Shown here: one piece after another, positions 16,165-58,886 of the stretch | Numbering within the stretch: the first letter of the stretch is position 1 | Layout: each line of letters starts with the position of its first letter | DNA from: Thalia democratica | Lineage: Eukaryota | Assembly (NCBI GenBank): GCA_965202585.1 | Contig: OZ241833.1 | Span: 13,144,001-13,208,000, forward strand | Reading direction: 5' to 3' | Length of the DNA: 64,000 bases | The notes under the pieces: generated by a model | What the model saw: only the letters and a program-made list of their open reading frames with translations | What the model was told of the DNA's origin: nothing | Database searches by the model: none | Made by a program: the position numbers and the translations under genes

Positions 16165-16785
16165 CTATCAAAATCCACCCGCGTTCAAAATCCACCCGAT
16201 CAAAATCCACCCGCATTCAAAATCCACCCGATCAAAATCCACCCGGTTTAAAATCCACCCGATCAAAATCCACCCGGGTCAAAATCCACCCGATCAAAAT
16301 CCACCCGAGTCAAAATCTACCCGATCAAAATCAACCCGAGTCAAAATCCACCCGATCAAAATCAACCCGGTTCAAAATCCATCCGATCAAAATCCACCCG
16401 ATCAAAATCCACCCGAGTTAAAATCCACCCGATTAAAATCCACCCGGTTCAAAATCCACCCGATCTAAATCAACCCGACTCTAAATCCACCCGTTTCAAA
16501 ATCCACCCGATCAAAATCCACCCGATCAAAATCCACCCGGTTCAAAATCCACCCGATCAAAATCTACCCGGTTCAAAATCCACCCGATCAAAATCAACCC
16601 AACTCTAAATCCACCCGTTTCAAAATCCACCCGATCAAAATCCACCCGGTTTAAAATCCACCCGATCAAAATCAACCCGAGTCAAAATCCACCCGATCAA
16701 AATTCATCCGAGTTAAAATCAACCCGAGTCAAAATCCTACCGACACAAAATCAACCAAAGTCAAAATCCAACCGAATCGAAACAA
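16165..16785 (+). repeat. Tandem array of 15-16-bp units (core TCAAAATCCACCCG), left arm of the foldback element
   Basis: About 40 units with 1-2-nt variable linkers (A, GT, AG), degenerating towards the interior. Confidence 0.95.
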
Positions 16786-20454: not shown

Positions 20455-20890
20455 GGGTGGATTTTGACTCGGGTTGATTTTGATCGGGTTGATTTTAATC
20501 GGGTGGATTTTGAACCGGGTTGATTTTGATCGGGTGGATATTGAACCGGGTTTATTTTGATCGGGTTGATTTTAATCGGGTGGATTTTGAACCGGGTGGA
20601 TTTTGATCGGGTGGATTTTGAACCGGGTTGATTTTGAACGGGTGGATTTTGACTCGGGTGGATTTTGACTCGGATGGATTTTGATCGGGTGGATTTTGAC
20701 CCGGGTGGATTTTGATCGGGTGGATTTTGAACCGGGTAGATTTTGATCGGGTGGATTTTGACCCGGGTGGATTTTGATCGGGTGGATTTTGACTCGGGTG
20801 GATTTTGATCGGCTGGATTTTGATCGGGTGGATTTTGATCGGGTGGATTTTGATCGCGGGTGGATTTTGATTGCGGGTGGATTTTGAACG
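20455..20890 (-). repeat. Inverted tandem array (CGGGTGGATTTTGA), right arm of the foldback element
   Basis: Reverse complement of the 16.2-16.8 kb array, about 28 units. Confidence 0.95.
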
Positions 20891-38792: not shown

Positions 38793-41700
38793 TTAACACC
38801 TAGTTCCAACACAACGTTGTCTATCCACAGGCAAGCCAAATGTTACACATTTCGTAAATGGCTCTGACACAGTTTCACCTCCCCTTTCGCTAATGCAATA
38901 CCTAAACCTCCTTCTGTTTCCCCTTCCGCATCGCCTGCTACATGGGCCCCAAGAAGTCCATTCGGTGAAACGTGTCGTACACTCTTCACTGCCACACTCT
39001 TCCACCTGTTAATTAAACTTGTTGTTTTTTTTATAATTCTACTTTTAGTCATCGACTAGTAGTATTAGAAATATACTATTTTTTTTTAATTTTACCAATT
39101 TATTGAAATATATTAATGTAGATTTCAAATGACTAAAACCTTTAGCATGCAGCTTTGGTCTCGAGGTCTGGCACTTTGAGGCCTTACAAGTCCTTTTCCG
39201 TCACATCTTCTCATTACAGTAACTTTTCCATTGCATTCAGCACTGCATTTGCCTATTTCCTTCCATTCGCTCCAGTTATTACACATTCCACGATTACATG
39301 CCTTAGTCTCGTTGCTGTTACTGTTTCCAAAACGGGTATCTGCGCAAAATTTCGGATCTACCGGTTTTCCTTTTTGCACACAGCTTCTGGTTCTGAATGT
39401 TTCACCTTCACCACATTTTTCGTCGCACATTGCCCATTGTGACCATTGTGAAAATACTGCTCGGCAGTATCCTTTGCACTCTTTAAAATCAGTGTAGCAG
39501 GACTGATCAAATATTTGAGCTGTTTTAGGAGAAAAAGACCTGTTAGATTGACAAACACGATTTCGTTTCTGAATTCCTCTCTGACCACACATAGATGCTG
39601 TACAACTTCCTACTACCCACGTAGACCATTTAGGACAGATACCTATATTACAAACTTTAACTTCAGTGTTGCCTTCGCGAACAATTTCCTCTAGGTCTGC
39701 AGGCTCACCAATTTTTAAGTCAGCACATTGTTCTAGTTCTACAGCTTCCCCGTCCAATAAGCAACCGCGAGTTCTCTTTGTTTCACCAACAGCACATTTA
39801 TTTGAGCATTTTGACCATTCTGTCCAGGGACCCCAAGAAAATATGCATTCCCGGAAGCATTCGACTGTTTGGAATGTACACTCTTCCGGCGTGTCCATTT
39901 TGTTGTACATTGGGTTAGAACATGTCCTTGTTTTGACTAAGAAACCTAAGCTATTGCAGCTGGCTTCGCAACTAGTCTCTTGCCAATCATTCCAAATTTC
40001 ACAGAAATCTTCTTGACATTGTTTTTCCTCATATGGCTCTCCATCTTCACATCTACTACTTTCCACGAGTTCCCCTTTTACGTAGCAACTCCTGGTTCGA
40101 TTATGCCAAGTTGGACTACAAAAGCTATCGCAATAAGACCAGTCACTCCAAGGACCGAAAATTCCAGGACACAAGTCGCCTAAGCATTTTGTTACATTTT
40201 TTTCACACTGCGCATTAGAAGGAAAACTACTTGGTGAATTGCAGTGTCTTTTCCACTCTATAGTTCCTTCTTCTTCACAAAAAGCATTGCAAGGTGTTGC
40301 TAAAGTAAATTCTGACCAGTTACTACACATTTCTTCATTACACTCTCCTTCTTCTAAAAAGTTTTCTTCATTTCCACAATCCCCATTTTGAGTTAAATCT
40401 CCAAACTCTGTCAAGCATGACCTTGTTCGCGTTCTAAAACCTGGCGTACAGGAGGTGGAACATTGTGACCACTCTCCCCAATCACCCCATTCAGGTGGAC
40501 ATGTAGGTGGACCTTCACATTCTCGCATTTCAGCGTAGCACAAACGTTGGTGAGATCTGAGCCTGAAATTTTTAGTTTCTGATGAACACATTCTTTTCCA
40601 ACGTTGCATAGAAGTAGATCTACAAGGAGCGTCGCATTCTTCTGCAGGTTCCCAGTCGTACCAAACAGAGCATAAGTTTTCGTTGCAAGTTTTTGTTTCT
40701 AAGTTCAAGCCTTGTTTCGGACACTCTGAGTTATCTACAAGCGTGCCATTTTCGTTAAAGCAAAATCTTTCACGTGTCTGTTCTCCTGGAGAGCATATAT
40801 TAGAACAATTCGACCATTCTTGCCATTGCCCCCATTGAGCGGGACATATTGGTGGTCCATTGCACGTTCTAGTGTCTTCGTAACAAGTTTTTTTATGCAA
40901 GTTTAGATCAGTATTAACCAAACATAACTTTGTGAAATTTTGCATAGATTTTTGGCGACACTTCGCCTGACATTTTTCTGTAGGTTGCCAGTCCGACCAT
41001 TGTGAACACAAATCACTGTTGCATACTTTTTCTTCAATATAGTCTAAAGTATCAGGGCATTGAGAATTATCAACTTGAGTTCCATTTTCATTTAGGCATG
41101 GTCTTATGCGCTCTTTTACTCCTGGACCACAAGATTCAGAGCAAAGTGACCAGTCATTCCATTCTCCATATTCAGGAGGACATACTGGGACACCTAGGCA
41201 TGTTCTAGTTTCAGAATAGCATGATTCTTTATGAGTAGTTAAGTCAACAAAAATACTACATGACCTTTTAAATGGCTGATCTGCTGTACTTCTACACTCT
41301 GCAGAACAGTTTTCTGCTTCAATCCATGGTAACCATTTTGGACAAAGTTCTTCATTACAGTCTCGAGTCTGTAGATAACTTTCATCACCAGTACATTTAG
41401 ACACAACTACTACTGTTCCGTTTTCATTTATGCAATTCCTTTTTCTTGTGCTTACACCTGGAACACAAACTTCAGAACATGAAGACCAAGAATCCCATTC
41501 TCCCCACTGTGGAGGGCATACAAGTGCTCCATAACATACTCTGTTTTCCTTATAACAACTTTCAATATGTAAATAAAGATCAATAGTGGTATTGCATGAT
41601 CTTTGCCAAGTTTGATTTGCAGTTTTTCTACACTCTGCAAAACAATCATTTTCAGGAGACCAATTGGACCAGTATGGGCAAAGATGACTGTTGCAACTTT

Positions 41701-44700
41701 GCTCTTCAACAAAACTAAATGGATCTTTACACTCTTTATTACTGACTTCAGTACCATTCTCACTTAGACATGGTCTCTGACGTTCTTTAAAACCAGGACC
41801 GCAAGAGTCAGAGCAACTTGTCCACGGTTTCCAAGATCCCCACTCAGGTGGGCATATAGAGGCACCTGAACAAATCCTGGTTTCTAAGTAGCAGTCTGAA
41901 TCATGTTCTTCTATGTCTATTTCTTCAAAGCAAGTTCTTACAAAAGTTTGGTCAGCTAAGGATCTACACAATGCTGAACAGTTTTCAGCAGCGGTCCAAT
42001 TAGACCATAGAGAACAAAGATTTGGGTTGCAAACTTCTGTTTGTAAACTAGAGCTTGTACTTGAACACTGTAAATTGTCAACTAAAGTTCCGTTTTCATT
42101 AAAACATTTTCTTATTCTTTCTCTGATACCAGGTGTACATGAAGATGAACAATTTGTCCAAGGCTGCCAATCACCCCATTCTGGCGGACATATTGGAGTT
42201 CCGGAGCATATTCTTTTTTGTTCGTAGCAAAAAGATTGGTGAACTTCAAGTTCCACGTTTTCTTTGCACATCCTATTGAATTTTTGATCACTTGTTGACC
42301 TGCAATTAGCATTACAACTCTCAGAAGGTTGCCACTGTAGCCAGAGAGGACAAAGATTGGTGTTACAAGGTTTACTTTCAGTATGACTTTCCGCACTATA
42401 ACATTCAGCATTGTGAACAACTGTTCCGTTTTCATTTATACACGGTCTTGTCCTATGTTTAACTCCCGGTGTACAGTCTTCAGAACAAGTAGACCAAGGT
42501 TCCCAATCACCCCATTGAGGTGGGCATATCGGTGGTCCGTAACAAGTTCTAGTTTCCTCATAACAGTTAAGATCATGTAAATTCAAGTCAACATTTTCAT
42601 TACAAGTTTTAACAAATAGTTGATCTGTTGAAGATCTACACTCAGCTGTACAATTATCTAAAGCCTCCCATTCAGACCAATCAGGACATAAATTATCGTT
42701 GCATTTACTTTCTTCAATAAAAGATTCAGGATTTTCACACTGTGAGACTTCTACAACAGTTCCATTTTCATTAAGACAAGGTCTGAAACGTTGATGCAAT
42801 CCTGGTGAACATGAGTTAGAGCAATTAGACCAGGACTCCCATGATCCCCATTCAGGAGGGCATATTGGAGGTCCGTAACAAACTCTTGTTTCTTCATAAC
42901 ATTTTTTAGCGTGAATGTTTAAGTCAATATCTTTTGTACACGTTTTTACAAATACTAGATCGGATTTCGAACGACATTCAGCAGTGCAGTTTTCTGTTGG
43001 TTGCCAGTCTGACCATACAGGACATAGGTTTTGGTTACAAGCTTCTTTTTCTGAATATTCTGTTGGTACTGGACATTCAGATCTATCAACTATAGTACCA
43101 TTTTCATTTATACACGGTCTTGTTCTATGTTTAATTCCAGGTGTACAGTCTTCAGAACAGGTAGACCAAGCTTCCCAATCACCCCATTGAGGTGGGCATA
43201 TTGGTGGTCCGTAACAAGTTCTAGTTTCTTCATAACAGTTAAGATCATGTAAATTCAAGTCAACATTTTCATTACAAGATTTAACAAATAGTTGATCTGT
43301 TGAAGATCTACACTCAGCTGTACAATTTTCTAAAGCTTTCCATTCAGACCAATCAGGACATAAATCTTCGTTGCATTTCCCTACTTCGATATAAGATTCA
43401 GGGTTTTCACACTGTGATATTTCTACAACAGTTCCATTTTCGTTAAGACAAGGTCTGACACGTTGATGCAATCCTGGTGAACATGAGTTAGAGCAATTAG
43501 ACCAGGACTCCCATGATCCCCATTCAGGAGGGCATATAAGAGGTCCGTAACAAACTCTTGTTTCTTCGTAACATTTTTTTGCATGAATATTCAAGTCAAT
43601 ATCTTTTGTACACGATTTTACAAGTACTAGATCGGATTTTGAACGACATTCAGCAGTGCAGTTTTCTGTTGGTTGCCAATCTGACCAAAAAGGACATAGA
43701 TTTTGGTTACAAGCTTCTTCTTCTGAATATTCAGTTGGTACTGGACATTCAGATCTATCAACTATAGTACCATTTTCATTTAAACACGGTCTTTTTCTAT
43801 ATTTAACTCCCGGTGTACAGTCTTCAGAACAAGTAGACCAAGGTTCCCAATCACCCCATTGAGGTGGGCATATCGGTGGTCCGTAACAAGTTCTAGTTTC
43901 TTCATAACAGTTAATGTCGTGCAAATGCAAGTCAAGAATTTCTTTACAAGTTTTAAAAAATATTTGGTCTTGAGAAGATCTACACTCAGCTGTGCAATTT
44001 TCTAAAGCTTTCCATTCAGACCAATCAGGACATAAATCTTCGTTGCATTTCCCTTCTTCGATATAAGATTCAGGGTTTTCACACTGTGATATTTCTACAA
44101 CAGTTCCATTTTCGTTAAGACAAGGTCTGACACGTTGATGCAATCCTGGTGAACATGAGTTAGAGCAACTAGTCCAGGACTCCCATGATCCCCATTCAGG
44201 AGGGCATACAAGAGGTCCGTAACAAACTCTCGTTTCTTCGTAACACTTTTTAGCGTGAATGTTTAAGTCAATATCTTTTGTACACGATTTTACAAGTACT
44301 AGATCGGATTTCGAACGGCATTCAGCAGTGCAGTTTTCTGTTGGTTGCCAATCTGACCAAACAGGACATAGGTTTTGGTTACAAGCTTCTTCTTCTAAAT
44401 GTTCTGTTGGTACTGGACATTCAGATCTATCAACTATAGTACCATTTTCATTTATACACGGTCTTTTTCTATGTTTACTTCCCGGTGTACAGTCTTCAGA
44501 ACAAGTAGACCAAGGTTCCCAATCACCCCATTGAGGTGGGCATATCGGTGGTCCGTAACAAGTTCTAGTTTCTTCATAACAGTTAATGTCGTGCAAATGC
44601 AATTCAACATTTTCTTTACAAGATTTAACAAATAGTTGATCTGTTGAAGATCTACACTCAGCTGTACAATTTTCTAAAGCTTTCCATTCAGACCAATCAG

Positions 44701-47700
44701 GACATAAATTTTCGTTGCATTTTTTTTCCTCATTATAAGAATCAGGATTTTCACAATGTGAGACTTCTACAACTGTACCGTTCTCGTTAAGACAAGGTCT
44801 GACACGTTGATGCAATCCTGGTGAACATGAGTTAGAGCAACTAGACCACGTTTCCCATGATCCCCATTCAGGAGGGCATATTGGAGGTCCGTAACAAACT
44901 CTCGTTTCTTCGTAACACTTTTTAGCGTGAATTTTTAAGTCAATATCTTTTGTACACAATTTTACAAATACTAGATCGGATTTCGAACGGCATTCAGCAG
45001 TGCAGTTTTCTGTTGGTTGCCAATCTAACCAAGCAGGACATAGATTTTGGTTACAAGCTTCTTCTTCTAAATATTCTGTTGGTACTGGACATTCAAATCT
45101 ATCAACTATAGTACCATTTTCATTCAAACACGGTCTTGTTCTATGTTTAACTCCCGGTGTACAGTCTTCAGAACAAGTAGACCAAGGTTCCCAATCACCC
45201 CATTGAGGTGGGCATATCGGTGGTCCGTAACAAGTTCTAGTTTCTTCATAACAGTTAATATCGTGCAAATTTATATCATTATTTTCTTTACAAGATTTAA
45301 TAAATAGTTGATCTGTTGAGGATCTACACTCAGCTGTACAATTATCTAAAGCCTCCCATTCAGACCAATCAGGACATAAGTTTTCGTTGCATTTCCCTTC
45401 TTCGATATAAGATTCAGGGTTTTCACACTGTGATATTTCTACAACAGTTCCATTTTCGTTAAGACAAGGTCTGACACGTTGATGCAATCCTGGTGAACAT
45501 GAGTTAGAGCAATTAGACCAGGACTCCCATGATCCCCATTCAGGAGGGCATATAAGAGGTCCGTAACAAACTCTCGTTTCTTTATAACATTTTTTTGCAT
45601 GAATATTCAAGTCAATATCTTTTGTACACGATTTTACAAATACTAGATCGGATTTTGAACGACATTCAGCAGTGCAGTTTTCTGTTGGTTGCCAATCTGA
45701 CCAAAAAGGACATAGGTTTTGGTTACAAGCTTCTTCTTCTAAATGTTCTGTTGGTACTGGACATTCAGATCTATCAACTATAGTACCATTTTCATTCAAA
45801 CACTGTCTTGTTCTATGTTTAACTCCCGGTGTACAGTCTTCAGAACAAGTAGACCAAGGTTCCCAATCACCCCATTGAGGTGGGCATATCGGTGGTCCGT
45901 AACAAGTTCTAGTTTCTTCATAACAGTTAATATCGTGCAATTGCAAGTCAAAATTTTTTTTACAAGATTTAAAAAATAGTTGATCTGTTGAGGATCTACA
46001 CTCAGCTGTACAGTTTTCTAAAGCCTCCCATTCAGACCAATCAGGACATAATTCTTTGTTGCATTTTCGTACTTCGATAAAAGATTCAGGGTTTTCACAC
46101 TGTGAAACTTCTACAACAGTTTTATTCTCGTCAAGACAAGGTCTGACACGTTGATGCAATCCTGGTGAACATGAGTTAGAGCAACTAGACCACGTTTCCC
46201 ATGATCCCCATTCAGGAGGGCATATTGGAGGTCCGTAACAAACTCTTGTTTCTTCGTAACATTTTTTAGCATGAATATTCAAGTCAATATCTTTTGTACA
46301 CGTTTTTACAAATACTAGATCGGATTTCGAACGACATTCAGCAGTGCAGTTTTCTGTTGGTTGCCAGTCTGACCAAACAGGACATAGGTTTTGGTTACAA
46401 GCTTCTTCTTCTAAATGTTCTGTTGGTACTGGACATTCAGATCTATCAACTATAGTACCATTTTCATTTATACACGGTCTTGTTCTATGTTTAATTCCCA
46501 GTGTACAGTCTTCAGAACAAGTAGACCAAGCTTCCCAATCACCCCATTGAGGTGGACAAACTGATGGCCCCTTACATACTTTTGTTTCCTTATAACATTC
46601 AATATTATGGTTTGTAATAATTGTTGATTGAGAGCATTTTCTTTCGAACTCTTGACTACTTGTAGATTTACATTTTGCACTGCAAACTGCTGTTGGTTTC
46701 CATTCGAGCCATGATTGACACAAGTTTTCGTTACAAGTTCGTTCGTCAATGTACTTTTCTGGATTTGAACAAGCTGTAAAATTAACACTTGTTCCGTTTT
46801 CATTCAAACATAGTCTATTTCTTCTCTGTAATCCTGGAGTACAAGAATTTGAGCAATTCGACCAAGCTTGCCATTCACCCCATTCAGGAGGACATATAGG
46901 TGGTCCTGTGCAAGTTCTTGTTTCAGAATAGCACTCTTCATTATGAACTTTGTGATCCATTTCAATCGAGCAATTTCTTTTAAACACTTGTTCACCTTGT
47001 GACCTACAATTCGCCGTGCAATTTTGTGTAGGCTCCCAGTTGTTCCAATATGGACAATAATTAGAGTTACATACTTCTTTTTCATAAAAAGAATCAGGAT
47101 TTACACATTCTTTGTTTTCTACTAGCGTATTGTTTTCATTATAACATGCCCTATTACGCGTTTTTATTCCTGGACTGCACGAAACCGAACAGTTTGACCA
47201 AGGTTCCCAATCTCCCCAGTGTGGAGCACATACTGGAGAACCATAACATAGTCTAGTATCTTTATAGCACTCTAAACTGTGTAAAGATAAATCTGTTGGT
47301 TCAGAACAAGTTTTAATGAATACTAGCTCAGCAGATGAACGGCAGAGAGCAGTGCAATTTTCAATTGCTTTCCAGTCTGACCATAATGGACACAATTTTT
47401 CATTACAGGTCGATACTTCTTTGTCAGTGTTAGGGTTTTCACATTCGAAATTGTCAACTAGTATACCATTTTCATTAAAACACGATCTTGATCTAGTTTT
47501 TACACCTTTTGCACAGCTTTCTGAACACCCTGACCAATGATGCCATGTACCCCACTTAGAAGGACAAATAGATGGTCCATTACAAGTACTATTCTCCATA
47601 TAGCATTCTGAAGAGTGTAAAGTCAAGTCAGTTTCTTGTTTACATTTTTTCAACAACAAAATATCAGCTGTTGATCTGCAATCAGCTGTACAGTTTTCAA

Positions 47701-50700
47701 TTTCTTCCCAGTCAGACCAAACTGGACACAAGTTTTTGTTACATTCAATTTGTTCACTATATTTGTCGAAACTTGGACAATGAGAAACATCTACTATTGT
47801 ACCGTTTTCATTTGAACATTTTCTTGATCTTTGTTGGATTCCTGGAGAACAAGATTGAGAACAGCTTGACCAGGCTTCCCATTCATTCCACTGTGGAGGA
47901 CAGACTGGTGGGCCATGACAAGTCTTTGTATCTTTATAACATAATTCTTGATGTAAACTTAAGTTAGTTTCGCTTTCACACGTTTTAAAATAATTTAGTT
48001 TTGCTGATGATCTGCATTTAGCTGTGCAGTTTTTCGAAGGTTTCCATTTAGACCAAAGGCGACATAAATTTTCATTGCAAAGTTGCTTTTGTTTATATTC
48101 ACTGTTTGGACATTTTAAATAGTCTGCGATAGTTGAATTTTCATTCAAACATAACCTTGTTCTTTCTTGAAAACCCGGCGTACAAGTTTCGGAACAATTA
48201 GACCATGGTTTCCATGACCCCCATTCTGGAGGACATATGGAAGGTCCATCACATGTTCTAGTTTCTACGTAACAGCTTGGCGAATGTAAACTGAAATTGA
48301 TATCATTCTTTCCAAAACAAGTTTTTCTGTAAACAAGCTCAGCAGTCGATCTACATTTTGCTGTGCATTGTCCAGTTGGTTCCCATACATCTGACCAAAC
48401 TGGACATAGTTCTATGTTACAAGCTTGTTCTTCGATATAATCATTTGGATCATCACATTCAGATTTGTTTATAGTCGTTCCATTTTCATTTACACAAGGT
48501 CTTAAGCGTGTTTGTACACCTGGAGTACAGGATTTCGAACATGAAGACCACGTTTCCCAATTCCCCCATCGTGGTGGACATATTTTAGGTCCTGAACAAG
48601 CTCTAATTTCTTCATAACATTTTTTCTCGTGAAAACTTAAGTCAACATTTTGAAGGCAACTCTTTACAAACAATTGATTGGTAGAAGATCTACACTTTGC
48701 TTTACAATTTTCTTTTGCTATCCAATCTGACCAAACAGGACATAGGTTTTGGTTACAAGCTTCTTCTTCTAAATATTCCCGTGGTACTGGACATTCAAAT
48801 CTATTAACTATAATACCATTTTCATTTATACACGGTCTTGTTCTATGTTTAATTCCCGGTGTACAGTCTTCAGAACAAGTAGACCAAGCTTCCCATTCGC
48901 CCCATTGGGATGGGCATATCGGTGCTCCGTAACAAGTTCTAGTTTCTTCATAACAGTTAATATCGTGCAAATTTATATCTTTTTTTTTTTTACAATATTT
49001 AACAAATAGTTGATCTGTTGAGGATCTACACTCAGCTGTACAATTTTCTAAAGCCTCCCATTCAGACCAATCAGGACATAAGTTTTCGTTGCATTTACTT
49101 TCTTCAATAGACGAACCAGGGTTTTTACACTGTGAAACTTCTACAACAGTTCCATTCTCGTTAAGACAAGGTCTGAAACGTTGATGCAATCCTGGTGAAC
49201 ATGAGTTAGAGCAATCTGACCAGGACTCCCATGATCCCCATTCAGGAGGGCATATAAGAGGTCCGTAACAAACTCTCGTTTCTTCGTAACACTTTTTAGC
49301 GTGAATGTTTAAGTCAATATCTTTTGTACACGATTTTACAAATACTAGATCGGATTTCGAACGGCATTCAGCAGTGCAGTTTTCTGTCGGTTGCCAGTCT
49401 GACCAAACAGGACATAGGTTTTGGTTACAAGCTTCTTCTTCTGAATATTCTGTTGGTACTGGACATTCAGATCTATCAACTATAGTACCATTTTCATTTA
49501 TACACGGTCTTGTTCTATGTTTAACTCCCGGTGTACAGTCTTCAGAACAAGTAGACCAAGTTTCCCAATCACCCCATTGAGGTGGGCATATCGGTGGTCC
49601 GTAACAAGTTCTAGTTTCTTCATAACAGTTGATATCGTGCAAATGCAAGTCAACATTTTCTTTACAATATTTAACAAATAGTTGATCTGTTGAGGATCTA
49701 CACTCAGCTGTACAATTTTCTAAAGCCTCCCATTCAGACCAATCAGGACATAAGTTTTCGTTGCATTTACTTTCTTCAATAGACGAACCAGGGTTTTTAC
49801 ACTGTGAAACTTCTACAACAGTTCCATTCTCGTTAAGACAAGGTCTGAAACGTTGATGCAATCCTGGTGAACATGAGTTAGAGCAATCTGACCAGGACTC
49901 CCATGATCCCCATTCAGGAGGGCATATTGGAGGTCCGTAACAAACTCTTGTTTCTTCATAACATTTTTTAGCGTGAATGTTTAAGTCTATATCTTTTGTA
50001 CACGTTTTTACAAATACTAGATCGGATTTCGAACGACATTCAGCAGTGCAGTTTTCTGTTGGTTGCCAGTCTGACCATACAGGACAAAGGTTTTGGTTAC
50101 AAGCTTCCTTTTCTGAATATTCTGTTGGTACTGGACATTCAGATCTATCAACTATAGTACCATTTTCATTTAAACACGGTCTTGTTCTATGTTTAACTCC
50201 CGGTGTACAGTCTTCAGAACAAGTAGACCAAGGTTTCCAATCACCCCATTGAGGTGGGCATATTGGTGGTCCGTAACAAATTTTAGTTTCTTCATAACAG
50301 TTAAGATCATGTAAATTTATATCAATATTTTCTTTACAAGTTTTAACAAATTGTTGATCTGTTGAAGATCTACACTCAGCTGTACAATTATCTAAAGCTT
50401 TCCAGTCAGACCAATCAGGACATAAATTTTCGTTACATTTTTCTTCTTCAATAAAAGATTCAGGATTTTCACACTGTGAGACTTCTACAACTGTACCGTT
50501 CTCGTTAAGACAAGGTCTGACACGTTGATGCAATCCTGGTGAACATGAGTTAGAGCAATTAGACCAGGACTCCCATGATCCCCATTCAGGAGGGCATATA
50601 AGAGGTCCGTAACAAACTCTTGTTTCTTCGTAACATTTTTTAGCATGAATATTCAAGTCAATATCTTTTGTACACGATTTTACAAATACTAGATCGGATT

Positions 50701-53700
50701 TTGAACGGCAATCAGCAGTGCAGTTTTCTGTCGGTTGCCAATCTGACCAAACAGGACATAGGTTTTGGTTACAAGCTTCTTCTTCTAAATATTCTGTTGG
50801 TACTGGACAGTCATTTGTATCAACTATAGTACCATTTTCATTTAAACACGGTCTTGTTCTATGTTTAATTCCTGGTGTACAGTCTTCAGAACAAGTAGAC
50901 CAAGGTTCCCAATCACCCCATTGAGGTGGGCATATCGGTGGTCCGTAACAAGTTCTAGTTTCTTCATAACAGTTGATATCGTGCAAATGCAAATCAACAT
51001 TTTCTTTACAAGATTTAAGGAATAGTTGATCTGTTGAAGATCTACACTCAGCTGTACAATTTTCTGAAGCGTTCCATTCAGACCAATCAGGACATAAATT
51101 TTCGTTGCATTTTTTTTCCTCATAATAAGAATCAGGATTTTCACAATGTGAGACTTCTACAACAGTTCCATTTTCGTTAAGACAAGGTCTGAAACGTTGA
51201 TGCAATCCTGGTGAACATGAGTTAGAGCAATCTGACCAGGACTCCCATGATCCCCATTCAGGAGGGCATATTGGAGGTCCGTAACAAACTCTCGTTTCTT
51301 CGTAACACTTTTTAGCGTGAATTTTTAAGTCAATATCTTTTGTACACAATTTTACAAATACTAGATCGGATTTTGAACGGCAATTGGCAGTGCAGTTTTC
51401 TGTTGGTTGCCAATCTGACCAAACAGGACATAGATTTTGGTTACAAGCTTCTTTTTCTGAATATTCAGTTGGTACTGGACATTCAGATCTATCAACTATA
51501 GTACCATTTTCATTTAAACACGGTCTTGTTCTATGTTTAATTCCCGGTGTACAGTCTTCAGAACAAGTAGACCAAGGTTCCCAATCACCCCATTGAGGTG
51601 GGCATATTGGTGGTCCGTAACAAGTTCTAGTTTCTTCATAACAGTTAAGATCATGTAAATTCAAGTCAACATTTTCTTTACAGGATTTAAGGAATAGTTG
51701 ATCTGTTGAAGATCTACACTCAGCTGTACAATTTTCTAAAGCTTTCCATTCAGACCAATCAGGACATAAGTTTTCGTTGCATTTTTCTTCTTCAAAAGAC
51801 GAACCAGGGTTTTTACACTGTGAAACTTCTACAGCTGTACCGTTCTCGTTAAGACAAGGTCTGACACGTTGATGCAATCCTGGTGAACATGAGTTAGAGC
51901 AATCTGACCAGGACTCCCATGATCCCCATTCAGGAGGGCATATAAGAGGTCCGTAACAAACTCTTGTTTCTTCGTAACATTTTTTAGCATGTATACTTAA
52001 ACTTGTACTTTTTGTACATGTTTTCTTAAACTTTTGATTTGTTTTTGAACGGCAATCAGCCGTGCAGTTTTCAATCGGTACCCAATCTGACCACGCCGGG
52101 CATAGTTCCTTGTTACATTTCTTTTGTTGAATGTAATTTTCGCTGTTTCCACACTCTAAATTATTTAATACTGAATTACTTTTATCCATGCATTTTCTCG
52201 TTCTAACTGTAGTTCCAGGACTACAATCAGAGGAACATGCTGACCAATTTTCCCATAAGCTCCATTTAGTTAAACACTGTCTTTCATTAATGCAATTTAT
52301 TTTTTCAAAATAGCAGGCTTCGTCGTGGTCCTTGAGATCGAAATTAATTGGTTCACGCAAACATGTTTTGTTATAGGTTTCATAGCCTATAGATTCGCAT
52401 TTAGCATCACAGCTTTTACTAAATTCCCATTCAGACCAAATAAAACAGAGTTTTGAATTGCAAGTTCTTTTTTCTTTTAAGTCCCCAGCAGGACATTCCA
52501 TTTCACTAACAGCTTTACCACCTACAAAGCACACTCTTGAACGTTCTTGAAAACCTCTTGTGCACGATTGTGAACAATCTGACCATTGGTTCCATTCTCC
52601 TAAAGTATATTTAGTATCACTTCGACAACTTTTTTCACTTACACAAGCTCTAATTTGAGAATAGCATGTAGACTTTAAACTTTGATAATCGAAACGAAAA
52701 TCATTTGTATTACATACTCTTTTAAAAATTCGGTACCCTCTACCCTGGCATTCGGCTTGACAATCTCCATCCGGCATCCAATCGCTCCAACGTGAGCATG
52801 AAGCTTCATTACAAGGTTTTGTTTGGCTGCTTTCGTTTTCGTTACAATTGACATTGTCTAACTGATTGTCAGCATTGTTTAGGCAAGTTCTTGTTCTGTT
52901 TGTTATTCCTGGACTACATTCATTTGAGCATTTTGACCAAGAATTCCAATTTGACCAACCAGATTCCTCAGTATTTTTTAGAAAATTTTTGAATGTTGTA
53001 TCTAAAATGTTTAAAGAATTTTGTAAGCTTTTTAGAAACACTTTTAATTGTCTTTGTGTTCTTTTAAAAAAAATTTATTTACGTTATTTTAAACAATACT
53101 TGTTTTTAAGTCTTTTTTATATAAAGTAATTGTGTAGTTTTATTCAAAAATAAATGCAATTTGTTAAGCAAATAATTCAAAAAATTTTTGTTAAAAACAT
53201 TAAATGTTTTAGTTGAAAACTAACTTAAGGGCTTCTACAACTAAAATTGTTAGCTAAAATATCAACATTATTTGATTCACCCACATTTTATCTTTCTTTT
53301 GGAAAAGTTTCTCAGCAATGAAATGTACAATTAACAAAAAATGTACTACTAAATAATACAAAATATTAAGATATAAAAGTTTAGTTTCTACTTTAGTTTA
53401 ATAACCATTTGTCTAGTACTATTTTTTAGACATGCTATCGCTTTCCGCTTTGTTTCAGTTTAATTGTACTCTAACAAGTTTTAATAGTACAGGAAAGTCG
53501 TATCGCATTTAATTAATTTTTAATCTAACCTTAGTTTTTTACTTTAACTTCATTTTATATTTTAAAGTTTTAACCTTCTGACCACAATATAACATTATTT
53601 TAGTCTTAAATTAAGTAGATACATTTTTTATACGTATTACTTAAAAGTCCATTTAATTTTTTGTCACCTTTTACTTTTTTTTTAATATAAACTGTATGTG

Positions 53701-56700
53701 TAACATAGTTTCTAGATTTCTCTAAGCAAGTGACCACATAATTATTTTGTGCATAAAACTTAAGGTTCAAACAAGCAAACATTTATTTAGTTTTAATAAG
53801 AACTTATATTATAAAACGCACGACAAACAAATTTAAAAGTTGACGCTTATTTATAAAATATCAAAAAAATTATCTGTATTAAAATTACTAACAGACCTAC
53901 AAAAACACTATTCTTTTCAAGTAAAGGTTGAGAAAAGATTATTTACTTTCTTTTTAAATATTGACAAAAGCTTTTAGAATCTTTATTTTCTTACTTTGGA
54001 TAACATTAGAATAAGAATGTTTATACTTACACTTTTTGAGGTATATTTATATTTTAATTAACAAATCTAACCAATGTTGTGGTAGCAAGACGGAAAATTT
54101 TTACTATCATAGCAGCACCCTTTACTTAGACACTTTGATTGCGAAATAAATGTATTTGAACATGGCTTTCTTTGAAAAACTTCTATAAAACATTGGTCCT
54201 TGCAAAATTCTGTTGTAATAATGTTTTGTGTCAATAACTGAAATTTTATACTTTGTTCGTAACCGCTTTTAGCTTATGCTCACTTGATAACTTATAAAAA
54301 TAAAGTCTAATTCAGTTTGAGTACATCTATTTACGATAATTAAATACCTTGAACATTAAAATGAAACTAAATTTTTAAAGTTTTAATCTTTTTACAAAAG
54401 AGTTTAAATTTTTATTTGGAGACAGTATGTATTATTTTTGAACATAATCTTTGATATAAAATTACTTTCATGTGCAAACTAAGATAGATTTTTTTAGCAT
54501 ATAAGCGAACGTTTGAAAAAACTATAAAAAAATGTTTTTTAAATTTGTAATATTAAAGAAATGCCATAAATCTTTAAATTGTTTGGAGTTTATGTTATAC
54601 CAATATATTTAAAGAGATAAAAAATTAAAAACACATTTGGTAAAAGTTTACCTTTTCAACACTTAATACTATGTGTGCTAAATATTTTTCTAAGCATATG
54701 ATATACTTTTTTATAGTTGTTTATATATATTTTTATTAGCACAAGCTTGTTATTCTAAAACTAGTTTACAAAGTATGTTACTTTAGTGACCCTTTCTTTC
54801 ATAGCAGTCTGGGACATTTTCATGTTGACTTTGTTGGTAGCAACAACCATTTTTGTTACATTCTTTTCTATCAAGTTTTCCTTGACCTCGAGGGCAATCT
54901 TTTCGCTCACTATCAGGTATTTTGCAGTAGCAATTAAGATGACGAGGGAAGATTTTTGTAAAATCAAAGTTGTTCTCTTTTATCACGTTTTCTTCTAAAA
55001 AAAGTCGTTTTCAGTTAATCAGATAAATAAATATTAAACTAATAAAGTTAAGTTATCTTTCTTTTTAGAATTAAAATATGACATTAATTTTAAAATTTCA
55101 AAAAAAAAAACTATTTTTGTTGCTTCCGCTGTCCTTTGTTTTTCCGTACAATTTTTCTAGCTCCTCAGGATACTCAGTTTGCATTGTCTCACCCTTGTTA
55201 ACAAAGTTTTCGAAAACATCTTCTGTTTTTATTTGTTACATAAACTATTTTTATACCAACAATTCTTTGCTTATTTTATTTAAAAAGCTGTATTTAACTA
55301 TATCTTTCAGCCTACAAAAAATTTTGTTTTTGTAAAACTAACGCTTCTCGTTTAAAAGTTTTCATAGATAAATAGAACATTTTTTACTATTATGGTGCTC
55401 TAGTTAAAATGTATGTTAAACCTTTAGAACTTTGTGTAAAAATAAACTGCTTAAAGTTTATCTATTAAATTAAGTAATGTTTTCTATATTGTTTTGTAAT
55501 GATCGATTTTTTTTTCTTAATCAGTTAACCATACATTTTACTATTCTTTAAAAAATTTAAGAGAATTAAACTATACTTTTAAACTTATTTAGTCATAGTT
55601 ACATATTTAAAAAGTACTTTAGTTATTTCTCAAACTTATAAAACTTTGAAACAATAAACTTTGCATACAAAAATCTGCAAATAAGTAAAAAGTTAAACAG
55701 TGTAACAAGTTTTTTTTAAATTATGTAGTAAAGTTTTTAGATAGTTTTACCAGATTTGCAATTAGAATTTTTTATAAAAAAAATTTGATGCAAGTAGAGC
55801 CGTACTAGGTGTTTTTCTTTTAATTTATTTCAATAATTAAACTTTCTACGAAAAATTTAGTTGTGTATTTGATAAGTTTAACTTTATATTTATGTTCTAA
55901 ACTAAAAAATATGAAGTAAAAGTGCTTAAATGGTTTTGTATTATGTTCTTTGAATTTAGCTGTTAAATCAAACTGTAAACAAATATTTTAAACATTTGTT
56001 TAACTAACAATTAAAACAATGTACTTTTAATTTATCGAAACTACTTTTAGATATTTGTTTTTGCTAATTCTTTTTTAATACTGTGCTGTATATCTTAACA
56101 CAGAACTTAAGTTTAGATGTTAAAAATGTTAGATTACTTGCATGTTTGACAAAAAAATCTACAACAAATTCATCGGAGTATAACAACATCTTTTTACTAA
56201 GTACTTTCTATATTGAAACTGACACATATTTCTTTTTGTTAAACTAGTTATCATTCTTTTAAAGATTTATTGAAGTAATATGAAAAGCTTCAAATTGATA
56301 ATGAATAAAACTATTTTACTTTTCAGTTGCAAATGGAATTTATTTAAAGCATTTAAACATAGCAACTTTTGTAGAAATATAGTTCTAGCAGCTTACAAGA
56401 CGCCAATTTTTAACTGATAAGAACTGTATTGATAAATAAATTATGATGAGTTATCTAAAAGTTTATAGTTTTAGAACAATTTTTCTTAAGTTCATCACCA
56501 AAACTTGTCAATTAACAGAGTCATAATGTATTTTAACAGGCTTTTTTTAATCAAAGTTATATATTTAAATTAAACCTTGTGCATAGTAACAAGATGGAAA
56601 TGTTCGTCTGTCAAAACAACACCCCTTACTCTCACAAGCAGATTTAGATGCCATCCAGCTCAAGCAAGGACTCCGAAGTCTTTTTTCGACCGAACAACGA

Positions 56701-58886
56701 TTTACACAAGATTCTGTAAATGAGATAGGTGCAAAGTATAACATTTTCAGTTTTAGAAAAATTAAAAGTTTTAAACTTTATTTAAAAGTTTTAAAATATT
56801 GAAAATTATGTATACAGTGTTTATTCACTTATCCGTAAAGTTTTACTTGAGAAGAAAAAAAAAATCAATATTTAACACAAACACTTTTGTGTGATACAAT
56901 TATTTAAGCTTTTATTCTGTAAGAAAGTTTAAAGTGTAATTATAAATTCTGCAATTTAGTTTGCAATTATGACGTATTAATACTACTAAAGCTTACATTT
57001 AAACTTTATTCAAAACTGGAAACAGATTTACATGTTTTTCATTGTGATTAATTTGTTTATATTTTTATAGACAAATACAATTATTATTTTTCTTAATCAA
57101 ATATTAGTCTATTTTAAATTAAAAGTAAGGGCAGGTGAAATTACAAAAGATGAATTTTTATACAGTGCGGCCCGCGAGCAAGTTTTTCTAAAAAAATTGT
57201 CTTGCGACTTATAAAAGGCTGCCGATTCACAGATTGTAACTATTTATACTAAGTAAAAAATATTATTATGTATGAAATTTTCTGTGTGCTGCCAATCTTT
57301 TATAATAGCTAACTAACTAACTTAATTAAAACAAATTTTAGGAAAAAAATTCTTGCGTAGCATTTTATTAAGAGCAAAAAAGTTATATTTAAGTACAAAC
57401 TTTTTTTTAAAAAACATCTTGGAGCATCCTCACTCAATGGTTCAATATAGCAGCACCCATACTTATGACAAGTTAATTGATCAAGATCGGCTGCATTTTC
57501 TCCACACGGTTCCCTGTAACCTTCTAAGACTTCACAATAGCAGCTTCTTTTTGCTGAAATTTTTTAACAAATAAAGCAAAAAAAGATAGGTTTTACTTTA
57601 GGTTTTTTCTAACTCAATAAAACGGCAGTATGTGTACGCTCTACTTTAATGACCTACTGCGTTTTGCTTCTAATAAAATCTGAAAAGCTCTATGAGTCAG
57701 TTGTTTTAATTTTTAATTGAGCGTTGAATGTTTTGATCCCTAAAATTTAACGCCTTGTTGCTATGTCTTTATCTTGTTTTTCAACAGGAAAATTTTTACT
57801 TTTATTAGTTATAAGTTTATTTCTGATATGAAATATTACTTTTGTTATAACTTCAATTATTTTTGTTATTTACAGAAAACTCATAAAATATTTAGTATTA
57901 CAAATAGCAGTATAAAGTTATAAAAATAGATTTTTGTAATACAATTTTAAGAAAAGTATTAAAAATGTTTTTGTTAGTTGAATTCAGCCTGATACTTATA
58001 AAACAATCCTTACCCCTAAAGTATTATAAGTGCTGAGTATAAAATATTTTTGGACTAAAATGTTGAAGAATTTTATAATTTAGTTATTTTAAACTTGTTT
58101 TAATTGTAATTGTTTATTGATCAACAAAAAAGCGTTTAATAAATTTAGTCTAAGGACCTTGTGTACGAAAAAACATTTCGGTTATCAAGTCATACTCCAC
58201 GGATACTGTTTCATGTCTTGTTAAAGTAATTTAATTATTTACATGAAATATTTATTTGTTTAACCTTTTTAATTTTTACTTTATTTAAAAAAAAACGGTT
58301 ATTTTTTACTAACTTTTGCTATTTTTAACACGAATATGATTTGATAAAAATTTTATAACTTAAAACGGCTCAATCAAAAGCAAATACCTGGACAAAAGTT
58401 AAACTGTATCCGTGGTGCGTGATTTGATAAACAAAAGGTTTTTTCGTACACCAGGTCCTTTGACCAAAGTTTTTGAGCGCTTTTTATTCTTTAATAAATA
58501 AACAATGTCTATTTTGTTTTTAATATTTTAAAAATCGATAGATTGAACAATTTTTTAGATTTTTATGCTTAAAGTACTAATGGAGCATTTTAAATATTTC
58601 AATGAAAATAGATAAATTTTGTTGTGTTTTGTTATACAGTTACAAATGACAGATAAGTATTATTTTGTAAAAAATCAATAGATTTATCGTTCTTAACATT
58701 GCAAAATATCTTTACAAGTACATTTTTTAAAACAAACAAAAAGTTGTTTTAGATTTTCATTTTAACCATTATTGTCAACTAACAATGAAAAAGATCGAAT
58801 TTTTCAAATATGGCATCACTTTTCACACTAGAACCCGATAGGAAGCTAAATACTAATAGTAAAACTATAAAACTACTTTTCTGCAT
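38793..58886 (-). CDS. Giant secreted protein: signal peptide + 3 trefoil (P-type) domains + 83 TSR-type modules, 4927 aa
   Basis: Minus-strand exons 58886-58784 (MQKSSFIVLLLVFSFLSGSSVKSD, signal-peptide-like), 57553-57401, 56713-56576, 55222-55112, 54994-54791, 53001-39140, 39005-38793 sum to 14784 nt = 4928 codons including the stop. All junctions are GT-AG with matching phases (1,1,1,1,1,0). No transmembrane segment seen. Additional small exons cannot be excluded. Confidence 0.85.
39140..53001 (-). CDS. Giant 13,862-nt coding exon encoding 41 canonical TSP1 repeats alternating with 41 divergent TSR-like modules
   Basis: Uninterrupted ORF (track 39125..53041). Acceptor aacattttag|AT ACA at 53001; donor CTA AAG|gtttta at 39140. 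Recurrent WGxWxxWSxCSxxCxPG..RxRxC motif alternates with WSDWxxxENCTAxCRS. Confidence 0.95.
42430..46555 (-). repeat. Coding higher-order repeat block 2 (units B,A x6 + partial B; 672-bp period)
   Basis: Same A/B units as block 1. Recurrences at 42915, 44259 (2 x 672), 45000, 45672, 46344 (672 steps). Boundaries approximate. Confidence 0.9.
48740..51935 (-). repeat. Coding higher-order repeat block 1 (units A,B x5; 672-bp / 224-aa period)
   Basis: Near-identical DNA segments recur every 672 bp (e.g. shadow ORFs at 49305 and 49977). A = EWGSWESWSDCSNSCSPGLHQR; B = QWGDWEPWSTCSEDCTPG.KHR. Boundaries approximate. Confidence 0.9.
54791..54994 (-). CDS. Trefoil (P-type) domain exon 3 of the giant gene
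   Basis: Phase 1-1 exon, 204 nt: ...LNCYCKIPDSERKDCPRGQGKLDRKECNKNGCCYQQSQHENVPDCYERK. Confidence 0.85.
56576..56713 (-). CDS. Trefoil (P-type) domain exon 2 of the giant gene
   Basis: Phase 1-1 exon, 138 nt: SCVNRCSVEKRLRSPCLSWMASKSACESKGCCFDRRTFPSCYYAQ; classic C-x9-C-x9-C-x4-CC spacing. Confidence 0.88.
57401..57553 (-). CDS. Trefoil (P-type) domain exon 1 of the giant gene
   Basis: Phase 1-1 exon, 153 nt: KRSCYCEVLEGYREPCGENAADLDQLTCHKYGCCYIEPLSEDAPRCFLKK; C-x9-C-x11-C-x4-CC-x11-C spacing. Confidence 0.85.
58114..58497. mobile_element. MITE with about 100-bp TIRs; full copy of a dispersed family with single-arm copies across the window
   Basis: Arms AAAAAGCGCTCAAAA..GGTC.AAGGACCTGGTGTACGAA..GGTTATC are inverted here. 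Related arms at about 2500, 3411, 6960-7050, 14965/15536-15605, 19895, 24140, 25690-25800 and 28555-28645. Confidence 0.75.

Follow-up and report, generated by a model that had tools for sequence, protein, structure and literature searches.

A minus-strand gene of Thalia democratica predicted to encode a very large secreted protein with trefoil domains and 83 TSR-fold modules

The window (the whole stretch of 64,000 nucleotides analysed, positions 13,144,001 to 13,208,000 of contig OZ241833.1) contains a real gene of Thalia democratica, which runs from 58886 to 38793 on the minus strand. In our model it consists of eight exons, all joined in frame and with the trefoil exons in phase 1-1. The giant open reading frame on this strand is intact (4638 codons, 39125-53041). 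The exons, in the order of transcription, are:

58820-58886, minus strand: exon 1, signal peptide (MQKSSFIVLLLVFSFLSGS...) with the ATG at 58886, from hydrophobicity and a phase-1 GT donor
57401-57553, minus strand: exon 2, trefoil 1, phase 1-1 (Pfam Trefoil, 26.4 bits; X1 record 3)
56576-56713, minus strand: exon 3, trefoil 2, phase 1-1 (Pfam Trefoil, 31.4 bits; X1 records 3 and 2)
55112-55222, minus strand: exon 4, acidic linker of 37 residues, 111 nt, phase 1-1 (RNA, X1 record 2)
54791-54994, minus strand: exon 5, trefoil 3, phase 1-1 (Pfam Trefoil, 39.4 bits; X1 record 2)
54072-54209, minus strand: exon 6, trefoil 4 (Pfam Trefoil, 36.2 bits; acceptor confirmed by RNA, phase-1 donor at 54072 predicted)
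39140-53001, minus strand: exon 7, the giant exon (13.9 kb), linker, modules 1-81 and most of 82 (open reading frame, translation, Pfam)
38793-39005, minus strand: exon 8, end of module 82, module 83 and stop (Pfam TSP1_ADAMTS, 29.9 bits)

Some borders have alternatives. The phase-1 donor of exon 1 lies at 58820 or alternatively at 58829, and the preferred acceptor of exon 7 is 53001 (TTTTAG), with 53040 as a phase-compatible alternative that has a weak AAG. Exon 4 was detected from RNA only; it has AG/GT borders and keeps the frame open. Exon 8 is joined in phase 0 and ends with the stop codon at 38795-38793, and the predicted junction between exons 7 and 8 gives module 82 its two completing cysteines.

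The predicted product has ~4,960-4,975 residues, with 10.6% Cys and 10.4% Glu, and its mature form would be acidic (pI ~4.9), with ~566 kDa before glycosylation. The initial annotation had counted three trefoils, 7 exons and 4927 aa; Pfam gives four trefoils (57553-57401, 56713-56576, 54994-54791, and 54209-54072), and with the extra acidic exon (55222-55112) the gene has eight exons and ~4961-4974 aa. Its general design was right: a secreted giant with N-terminal trefoils and a TSR-only body, with the signal-peptide exon at 58886. The N-terminal signal is the sole strongly hydrophobic stretch, and no transmembrane helix was found in the predicted protein, as the annotation had stated. The same applies to the lack of protease, vWD, and EGF domains, since Pfam returned only Trefoil and TSR families.

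Marine metatranscriptome contigs confirmed all the junctions from the signal peptide through trefoils 1 and 2, the acidic exon and trefoil 3 to trefoil 4. X1 record 3 connects 57553-57409 (trefoil 1) with 56712-56642 (trefoil 2); between the two pieces it has 11 letters vs. 9 by the model, at an A-run, which leaves the exact joint ambiguous. In bin 58750-58930, X1 has a depth of 1.14, which is what 52 nt of record 3 (depth 3.98) would give, indicating that this record runs on from trefoil 1 into exon 1. By the same depth arithmetic, the first 38 nt of X1 record 2 fall in exon 3, and thus exon 3 is spliced to the acidic exon 4. Record 2 is then contiguous over 55222-55112, 54994-54791, and 54209-54128, confirming both exon 5 borders and the acceptor at 54209, and ends inside trefoil 4. 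The chain of exons with matching phases proposed initially is therefore in frame and backed by RNA as far as trefoil 4. Of the cDNA check proposed across all exons, the RNA contigs supplied the spliced part from signal peptide to trefoil 4; the metatranscriptome contigs gave no RNA evidence for the junction of the giant exon with exon 8, and the one between trefoil 4 and the giant exon is taken up below.

The four trefoils (26.4-39.4 bits, Pfam cut-off of 21 bits) have the six cysteines of PF00088 in the spacing C-x9-10-C-x9-11-C-x4-CC-x8-11-C. These cysteines are invariant when aligned with the Ciona and Styela domains described below, and the best PDB matches of the trefoil profile are TFF2, TFF3, and TFF1 (E 2e-9). 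Each of the four domains also carries an extra N-terminal cysteine, which in exon 2 is a seventh cysteine ahead of trefoil 1. Only two side chains of TFF trefoils contact GlcNAc-alpha-1,4-Gal (PMC7221086): the Asn/Asp directly preceding Cys2 and the Trp directly preceding Cys6. In trefoils 1-4, the residues preceding Cys2 are P, P, D, and P, and those preceding Cys6 are R, S, D, and S. The Trp is thus missing in four of four trefoils and the Asp present in one of four, and the Trp before Cys6 occurs in none of the 15 aligned family domains. With these lectin residues missing, the glycan-binding head proposed in the initial annotation is unsupported, and we can offer no better than a guess on the role of the trefoil head.

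As assembled, the array contains 83 modules of two types in strict alternation, 42 A and 41 B. The A modules are canonical TSRs recognised by Pfam: single modules scored 27-38 bits (PF00090 / PF19030 / PF19028; cut-off 23.8) and presented W-x-x-W-x-x-W, C-S-x-x-C-x-x-G, R-x-R, and six cysteines. In an alignment of 40 distinct A modules, W7, W10, R24, R26, and the six cysteines were invariant. On the giant exon, Pfam matched TSR families only, including 38 TSP1_ADAMTS stretches.

The B modules are six-cysteine modules of ~55 residues, lacking the third Trp and the R-x-R (Arg ladder), and they were found nowhere else in the T. democratica genome. When scanned singly (6-8 tested), they matched no TSR family above the cut-off (E<=1). 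However, hhalign aligned the B with the A profile at 95% probability (E 4e-8) and with all six cysteines in register, and against PDB the B profile matched TSR chains only (TSP-1, properdin, BAI; best 1LSL, E 0.0027). An AlphaFold (AF2) model of an A-B pair, built from the alignment, reached pLDDT 95.1, and its strong Foldseek matches (E <= 0.001) were all TSR-containing structures; the top matches, TSP-1 TSR2-3 among them, span both modules, with ~119 columns aligned to two-TSR structures. Profile comparison and predicted fold place the B modules as divergent TSRs. The initial count of 83 TSR modules was correct as a number, but only the 42 A are TSRs by Pfam and the 41 B are TSR-like by profile and predicted fold.

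Two younger blocks of the array are built from one 672-nt unit of four modules, A1-B1-A2-B2:

48905-51928, minus strand: younger repeat block 1, A-B pairs 4-12 (nucleotide identity)
42515-46546, minus strand: younger repeat block 2, A-B pairs 20-31 (identity matrix)

Equivalent A-B pairs are 88-97% identical at the nucleotide level (21 near-identical pairs as assembled), and the two kinds of pair are ~65% identical to each other. The pairs between the two blocks (13-19) are older and share 55-66% identity with the other pairs, except that pair 13 is ~80% identical to one of the pair kinds. The repeat units present a dN/dS of 0.26-0.31 with a dS of 0.14-0.22, every unit retains all its Cys and Trp, and the frame stays open across 13.9 kb. 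From these comparisons, about half of the array derives from amplification of the 672-nt unit, under purifying selection.

For the initial claim of an architecture without a match, the databases gave a different answer. A B-profile search of 1.84 billion representative proteins returned, among the best foreign matches, Ciona XP_018672591.1 / XP_078495944.1 and Styela XP_039265876; the top-scoring foreign match, a gastropod protein, was set aside as an ordinary TSR array. Ciona intestinalis XP_078495944.1 (3763 aa) and Styela clava XP_039265876 (1578 aa) are RefSeq models with a signal peptide, 5-7 trefoils and a strict A/B array up to the C-terminus, and no further domain was found in them. 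Their first trefoils share the extra cysteine as C-x-C or C-x3-C. The match by BLASTP is collinear over the trefoil-to-TSR boundary (residues 89-640 vs. 283-840), and the C-terminal 694 residues best match the Ciona C-terminus (34% identity, 473 bits). In genomic contigs of two further organisms, too, A/B exons are immediately preceded by trefoil exons.

The relatives differ from the T. democratica protein in several respects. Identity is ~27-34%, the trefoils number 4 in T. democratica vs. 5-7, and the modules 83 vs. ~57 in Ciona and ~17 in Styela. After trefoil 2, Ciona has a Pro/Thr-rich mucin-like linker, whereas T. democratica has the acidic exon. The Ciona and Styela proteins are automatically named "SCO-spondin-like", and the older partial Ciona models (XP_018672591.1, XP_009857833.1) are labelled 'ADAMTS adt-1-like'. 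A literature search found no paper describing a trefoil + A/B TSR family, so the initial view that a described family is lacking holds, the relatives existing as automatic annotations only. The features of this family –signal peptide, at least four trefoils and alternating A/B modules– are present in T. democratica, ordered and on one strand, with an inferred junction between trefoil 4 and the array. Since the same design is annotated in Ciona and Styela, the gene is not a one-off; judging from the sequence comparisons, it would belong to a so far uncharacterised family of tunicates and be a very large member of it, enlarged by the tandem amplification of the 672-nt unit.

Altogether, the locus probably represents one minus-strand gene of this family, encoding a secreted extracellular filament protein with trefoils and 83 TSR-fold modules. 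The protein would be exported via its signal peptide, and its TSRs may be C-mannosylated, O-fucosylated, and N-glycosylated. It would then form a long semi-rigid filament, perhaps 0.4 um in length, and the trefoil head, with its four unpaired-looking cysteines, could serve for end-to-end or lateral cross-linking or dock to a different component of the matrix. Such an extracellular filament, secreted and cross-linkable, is the most likely function. Candidate matrices would be pharyngeal mucus or a feeding net, gut mucus, and the tunic; we regard the mucus and feeding-net roles as speculative, and the tunic and egg-coat roles considered initially are likewise conjectural.

With the gene model unchanged, the protein could instead be soluble and act in pattern recognition or signalling, for example as a properdin-/complement-like opsonin or a guidance cue, with TSRs that would bind microbes, glycosaminoglycans or receptors. 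The nearest solved folds are TSRs of properdin, TSP-1, C6, and semaphorin-5A, which act in recognition, and tunicate gut barrier immunity employs TSR proteins such as Ci-MACPF1, with 10 TSRs (PMC6109156). We regard this function as unlikely, since 83 modules derived from one near-identical unit fit selection on length or valency better than specific recognition, no effector domain (MACPF, protease, CTCK) was found by Pfam, and module numbers varying from ~17 to 83 across species are seen more typically in structural repeat proteins.

The junction of trefoil 4 with the giant exon, which was not seen spliced in either the metatranscriptome contigs or the Tara unigene, bears on whether the locus makes two products instead: a short secreted peptide of four trefoils (a four-domain TFF-like product) and a separate TSR-array transcript starting in the intron upstream of 53001. 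Read-through of the trefoil 4 donor gives Gly and then an in-frame stop, so the short product would end just past trefoil 4, and the spliced trefoil contig does terminate within that domain. Upstream of the preferred acceptor, two RNA contigs extend as far as 53041 and 53050, and Tara unigene P0029, which is 96% identical and overlaps the beginning of the giant exon, extends to ~53080; all remain collinear with the genome, and none is spliced to trefoil 4. However, X2 record 6 covers trefoil 2 plus both its flanking introns, which demonstrates unspliced material in the libraries, and this, although unproven, is likely to account for the collinear RNA. In the giant exon, there is an in-frame stop at 53077-53075, and the first TSR is preceded by neither an in-frame ATG nor a signal peptide, so that on its own the array would not be secretable and its disulfides would not form. 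The donor and the 53001 acceptor agree in phase, the acceptor is YAG as in five of the five RNA-confirmed acceptors of the gene, and the Ciona and Styela models join trefoils and array in a single protein. Intron phase, acceptor and homology point to the junction being used, and two separate products seem improbable. A short four-trefoil isoform may coexist with the long form.

That misassembly accounts for part of the extreme size, with a true copy number of the 672-nt unit lower or higher, is very improbable despite the 21 A-B pairs at 88-97% identity, because copies diverging by 3-12% are easily resolved by long reads, frame, Cys and Trp are complete throughout, and the Ciona model is likewise large, with its ~57 modules.

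Compared with known systems, the predicted filament protein of this single gene resembles SCO-spondin, the Reissner fibre protein, which is also giant and secreted, a glycoprotein rich in TSRs that assembles into an extracellular fibre. SCO-spondin, however, interleaves its TSRs with EMI, vWD/C8/TIL, LDLa, EGF, and a C-terminal cystine-knot and has no trefoil head; with Pfam giving Trefoil alone on the matching small exons and TSR families alone on the giant exon, we reject this identity. ADAMTS / adt-1 is rejected as well: Pfam found no Reprolysin, disintegrin-like, Cys-rich or spacer domain in any exon, nor ADAMTS domains in the Ciona protein, scanned over its first 460 and last 464 residues. 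Gel-forming mucins combine vWD assemblies and a CTCK with a long O-glycosylated region rich in Pro/Thr/Ser; Pfam found no vWD or CTCK here and there is no PTS tract, a short PT-rich linker being present in the Ciona relative only, and thus this candidate was discarded too.

The best word-index matches to the giant exon were Ciona intestinalis LOC100179634 (7432 aa) and giant TSR+VWA proteins of Styela and Oikopleura. In LOC100179634 a trefoil precedes the TSRs, as in T. democratica, and a cysteine motif resembling a trefoil, with no Pfam call, is present in the Oikopleura protein. These TSR+VWA proteins form a separate family: they contain C-type lectin, EGF, and repeated VWA domains, and their TSRs are nearly all canonical, with no A/B alternation.

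An ectodomain of two alternating TSR subtypes is also found in THSD7A, whose d1-d2 structure (8oxr) appeared at Foldseek rank 30. THSD7A is a membrane protein with ~21 TSRs and no trefoils, and the second of its subtypes resembles TSRs of C6/F-spondin, whereas the B module retains the cysteine register of TSP-1. Finally, TFF1-3 share the six-cysteine P-domain signature but are peptides of 60-106 residues, with lectin residues that are not conserved in the T. democratica trefoils. TFF2 starts with C-R-C, comparable to the extra N-terminal cysteine seen here, and in TFF2 the extra cysteine forms an inter-domain disulfide.

At the gene level, the locus differs from the surrounding AT-rich DNA in composition (G+C of 37-40% within the coding block vs. 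~23-29% outside the gene). An uninterrupted minus-strand ORF of 4638 codons (53041 to 39125) is preceded by four small minus-strand ORF pieces with the CC[FY] trefoil signature, and the start codon at 58886, further upstream, opens a classical signal peptide. All four pieces scored above the 21-bit Pfam gathering threshold for Trefoil (26.4, 31.4, 39.4, and 36.2 bits), and all four exons are phase 1-1 and have YAG at the acceptor and GT at the donor. The initial annotation was largely right overall, but it counted three trefoils, missed one exon, and labeled every repeat module simply as TSR-type. At the other end of the gene, a phase-0 splice (39140 to 39005) brings in a final Pfam-positive TSR downstream of the giant exon, and the last exon also supplies the two cysteines completing the penultimate module. 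Across the whole protein we counted 526 cysteines and 118 W-x-x-W motifs, together with 91 N-glycosylation sequons and 22 POFUT2-type sites; its signal peptide is the sole hydrophobic segment.

RNA libraries containing the gene sequence were marine metatranscriptomes only, and we placed their contigs on 52950-58930. One contig carried 55222-55112, 54994-54791, and 54209-54128 contiguously. It confirmed two predicted junctions and exposed the exon absent from the earlier model, an acidic one of 111 nt (55222-55112) that keeps the frame. A second contig spliced 57553-57409 to 56712-56642. The unplaced contig ends matched the binned depths: the second contig accounts for 52 nt in the signal-peptide exon, and the first for 38 nt in trefoil 2. 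These contig joins and the depth match show that the signal peptide, trefoil 1, trefoil 2, the acidic exon, trefoil 3, and trefoil 4 belong to a single spliced transcript.

For the step from trefoil 4 into the giant exon, neither the metatranscriptome contigs nor a Tara Oceans unigene (P0029) provided a spanning sequence. We favor one protein joining the trefoils to the TSR array through the acceptor at 53001, a junction read from phase, its YAG acceptor, and the homologues. No other YAG acceptor lies in the correct phase, a stop at 53077-53075 closes the frame upstream, no ATG or signal peptide of the giant exon's own was found, and the homologues join both parts. The resulting protein would have 4961 residues. 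The acceptor at 53040 is an alternative only: it is in phase 1, but it is a weaker AAG site, and it would give 4974 residues. A third candidate, 53060, was ruled out, since it is AAG and in phase 2 vs. the phase-1 donor of trefoil 4, and the other two frames hit stops. Metatranscriptome contigs at the giant-exon start extend to 53041 and 53050, and P0029, 96% identical and the only near-identical protein covering this start, is collinear with the genome to ~53080, past 53001. We read the collinear contigs as intron-retaining because the libraries contain unspliced or genomic material, as seen in one contig that covers trefoil 2 and both flanking introns. Two scans of JGI metagenome contigs, one querying the giant-exon start and the other trefoil 3, yielded no relatives.

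Segmentation of the array gave 83 modules, the number first annotated, of 44-74 residues (mostly 55 or 57) and six cysteines each. Two types alternate without exception. The 42 A modules carry W-x-x-W-x-x-W, C-S-x-x-C-x-P-G, and R-x-R; they are textbook TSRs recognized by Pfam. The 41 B modules retain W-x-x-W and the cysteines but no longer have the third Trp or the Arg ladder, and none of those scanned singly matched a Pfam TSR model. Over all 4620 residues of the giant exon, Pfam returned TSR families only. Three independent tests nevertheless place B among the TSRs, as a subtype invisible to Pfam. In a profile-profile comparison, B matched A with 95% probability (E 4e-8) and all cysteines in register. 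PDB matches of the B profile were only TSRs of thrombospondin-1, properdin, and BAI1. AlphaFold modeled an A-B pair with a pLDDT of 95.1 (alignment of 53 pairs), and every strong Foldseek match to this model contained TSRs, the best covering both modules; modeling of an A-B-A-B unit from a single sequence reached a pLDDT of 37. Within the 802-Mb genome, B modules are confined to the gene at this locus.

Regarding the growth of the array, a 672-nt A1-B1-A2-B2 unit recurs throughout A-B pairs 4-12 and 20-31. This period exceeds the Tandem Repeats Finder limit of 500, so the program returned nothing and the repeats were read from the identity matrix instead. Equivalent positions of the unit copies share 88-97% nucleotide identity; the other pairs are 55-66% identical to anything else, except for pair 13 (~80%). 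Younger copies presented a dS of 0.14-0.22 and a dN/dS of 0.26-0.31. Thus, the amplification is of some age, its copies can be told apart, and the protein sequence is constrained. As the family shows, a single 13.9-kb exon can accommodate the amplification of a four-module unit that stays under purifying selection.

Other features of the window were as follows:
29753-30310 and 36683-37462, plus strand: LRRC34 orthologue in two exons (Pfam LRR_6), convergent with the TSR gene
31506-31928 and 34012-34398, minus strand: two ORFs of 140 and 128 residues inside the LRRC34 intron
16182-16743 and 20452-20871, inverted orientation: two short-tandem-repeat arrays, ~3.8 kb apart and 71-84% complementary

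The best named match of the LRRC34 orthologue was Styela clava LRRC34-like (50% identity), and metagenome and metatranscriptome proteins were 89-97% identical to the orthologue. Together with the marine RNA and the Ciona and Styela relatives of the TSR gene, this match speaks for a tunicate, probably a planktonic one, and against Hydra, which the AT-richness had first suggested. The two ORFs in the LRRC34 intron resemble remnants of a transposase, domesticated or decayed, but had no Pfam match. Translation of the inverted arrays gave KIHP/KSTR runs, and their GC skew is strong and opposite; they could be a palindromic satellite or mark the termini of a large transposon. Within the TSR gene, intron 1 holds a very high-copy repeat (58150-58550), probably a short interspersed or MITE-like element. 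Its summed contig depth in the DNA run was ~41,000-186,000 vs. ~100 in the flanks, so its copy number probably lies in the hundreds to thousands. Numerous contigs end within it, at 58426-58485, and it also occurs in RNA libraries. The intron between trefoils 1 and 2 contains a moderate repeat (56750-57350; DNA depth ~3,500-4,200 vs. ~100), with transcribed copies in metatranscriptomes.

At the functional level, the protein carries a secretion signal and combines a trefoil head with a disulfide-locked modular rod, and it lacks a membrane anchor; it is under purifying selection and is expressed in wild marine samples. It probably forms an extracellular filament, whose length would be set by repeat number. 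A single TSR is roughly 4.5-5 nm long, which would give ~0.4 µm at full extension. The glycan-binding head initially proposed is not supported by the trefoil residues. TFF proteins contact GlcNAc-alpha-1,4-Gal through an Asn/Asp and a Trp (PMC7221086), and both are replaced in the trefoils of the family, so binding of this ligand appears unlikely from the residues present. All four trefoil exons encode a seventh cysteine, and the TFF2 N-terminus likewise has an extra one; these cysteines could pair inside the head or cross-link molecules.

Could this family be the long-sought protein fiber of the tunicate mucous feeding filter, the pharyngeal net secreted by the endostyle? We consider it rather doubtful. 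The TSR rod (~0.1-0.4 µm) would set the mesh dimension, the cysteine-bearing trefoil head would form the knots, and module number would tune mesh size to feeding ecology in a planktonic species. The hints are limited to secretion, the association of trefoils with mucus, the differing repeat number between species, and a preprint (10.64898/2026.03.31.715263) reporting strong expression, in endostyle cells of Oikopleura, of a gene auto-named 'sco-spondin', a possible member of the family. Expression in the endostyle or another mucus gland would offer a molecular way into how filter nets and mucus are built in the vertebrates' sister group; otherwise, this would be one more lineage-specific matrix protein. 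Its interest is moderate, and would be higher if it proves to be the mucus-net fiber.

Regarding relatives, a word-index search with the giant-exon start retrieved further giant TSR proteins, those of Styela and Ciona ranking highest. We rejected these as family members, since they contain VWA, EGF, and C-type lectin domains and lack A/B alternation. This second tunicate giant-TSR family, with VWA domains, includes Ciona LOC100179634 (P0002, 7432 aa) and an Oikopleura protein (P0010, 3214 aa). The former also has a C-type lectin domain, EGFs, and, on the N-terminal side of its TSRs, a trefoil (21.6 bits; absent from the precomputed Pfam list); the latter has only a trefoil-like cysteine motif without a Pfam call.

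A B-profile search covered 1.84 billion representative proteins. Its top match, from the gastropod Batillaria (P0030), was discarded because it is an ordinary TSR array that has neither trefoils nor alternating modules. The second best was a Ciona intestinalis model whose cluster includes XP_078495944.1. BLASTP aligned this protein with ours collinearly over the trefoil-to-TSR boundary, and the two C-termini were mutual best matches. In genomic contigs of two further organisms, trefoil exons lie just 5′ of A/B exons. Smaller family versions from other organisms appeared in SRR25569774 (L009), SRR10746996/7 (L010/L011), and ENA/Logan metagenome contigs (L012-L014): L009 and L010 carry trefoil exons, A/B TSR exons, and then a final exon of ~2.5 kb, and L012-L014 only the C-terminal A/B part.

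The architecture, at first matched to no described family, is thus present in RefSeq, in the Ciona and Styela models, but still new to the literature: searches on trefoil plus TSR, endostyle plus SCO-spondin, the mucous net, and the Ciona and Styela endostyle atlases found no description of the family. The family defined here comprises giant secreted proteins of tunicates, wrongly named SCO-spondin or ADAMTS by annotation pipelines, and domain-based surveys undercount it because half its modules are the Pfam-invisible subtype.

In Ciona XP_078495944.1 ("SCO-spondin-like", 3763 residues), the signal peptide is followed by five trefoils (Pfam 79.5 bits), then by a short Pro/Thr linker and ~57 modules that alternate between A and B; the protein has no other parts. 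Styela clava XP_039265876 ("SCO-spondin-like", 1578 residues) follows the same plan with 6-7 trefoils and ~17 modules. The Thalia democratica protein is a new, greatly expanded variant of this uncharacterized family made of known domains, with a repeat number that ranges five-fold across species, from 17 in Styela and 57 in Ciona to 83 here.
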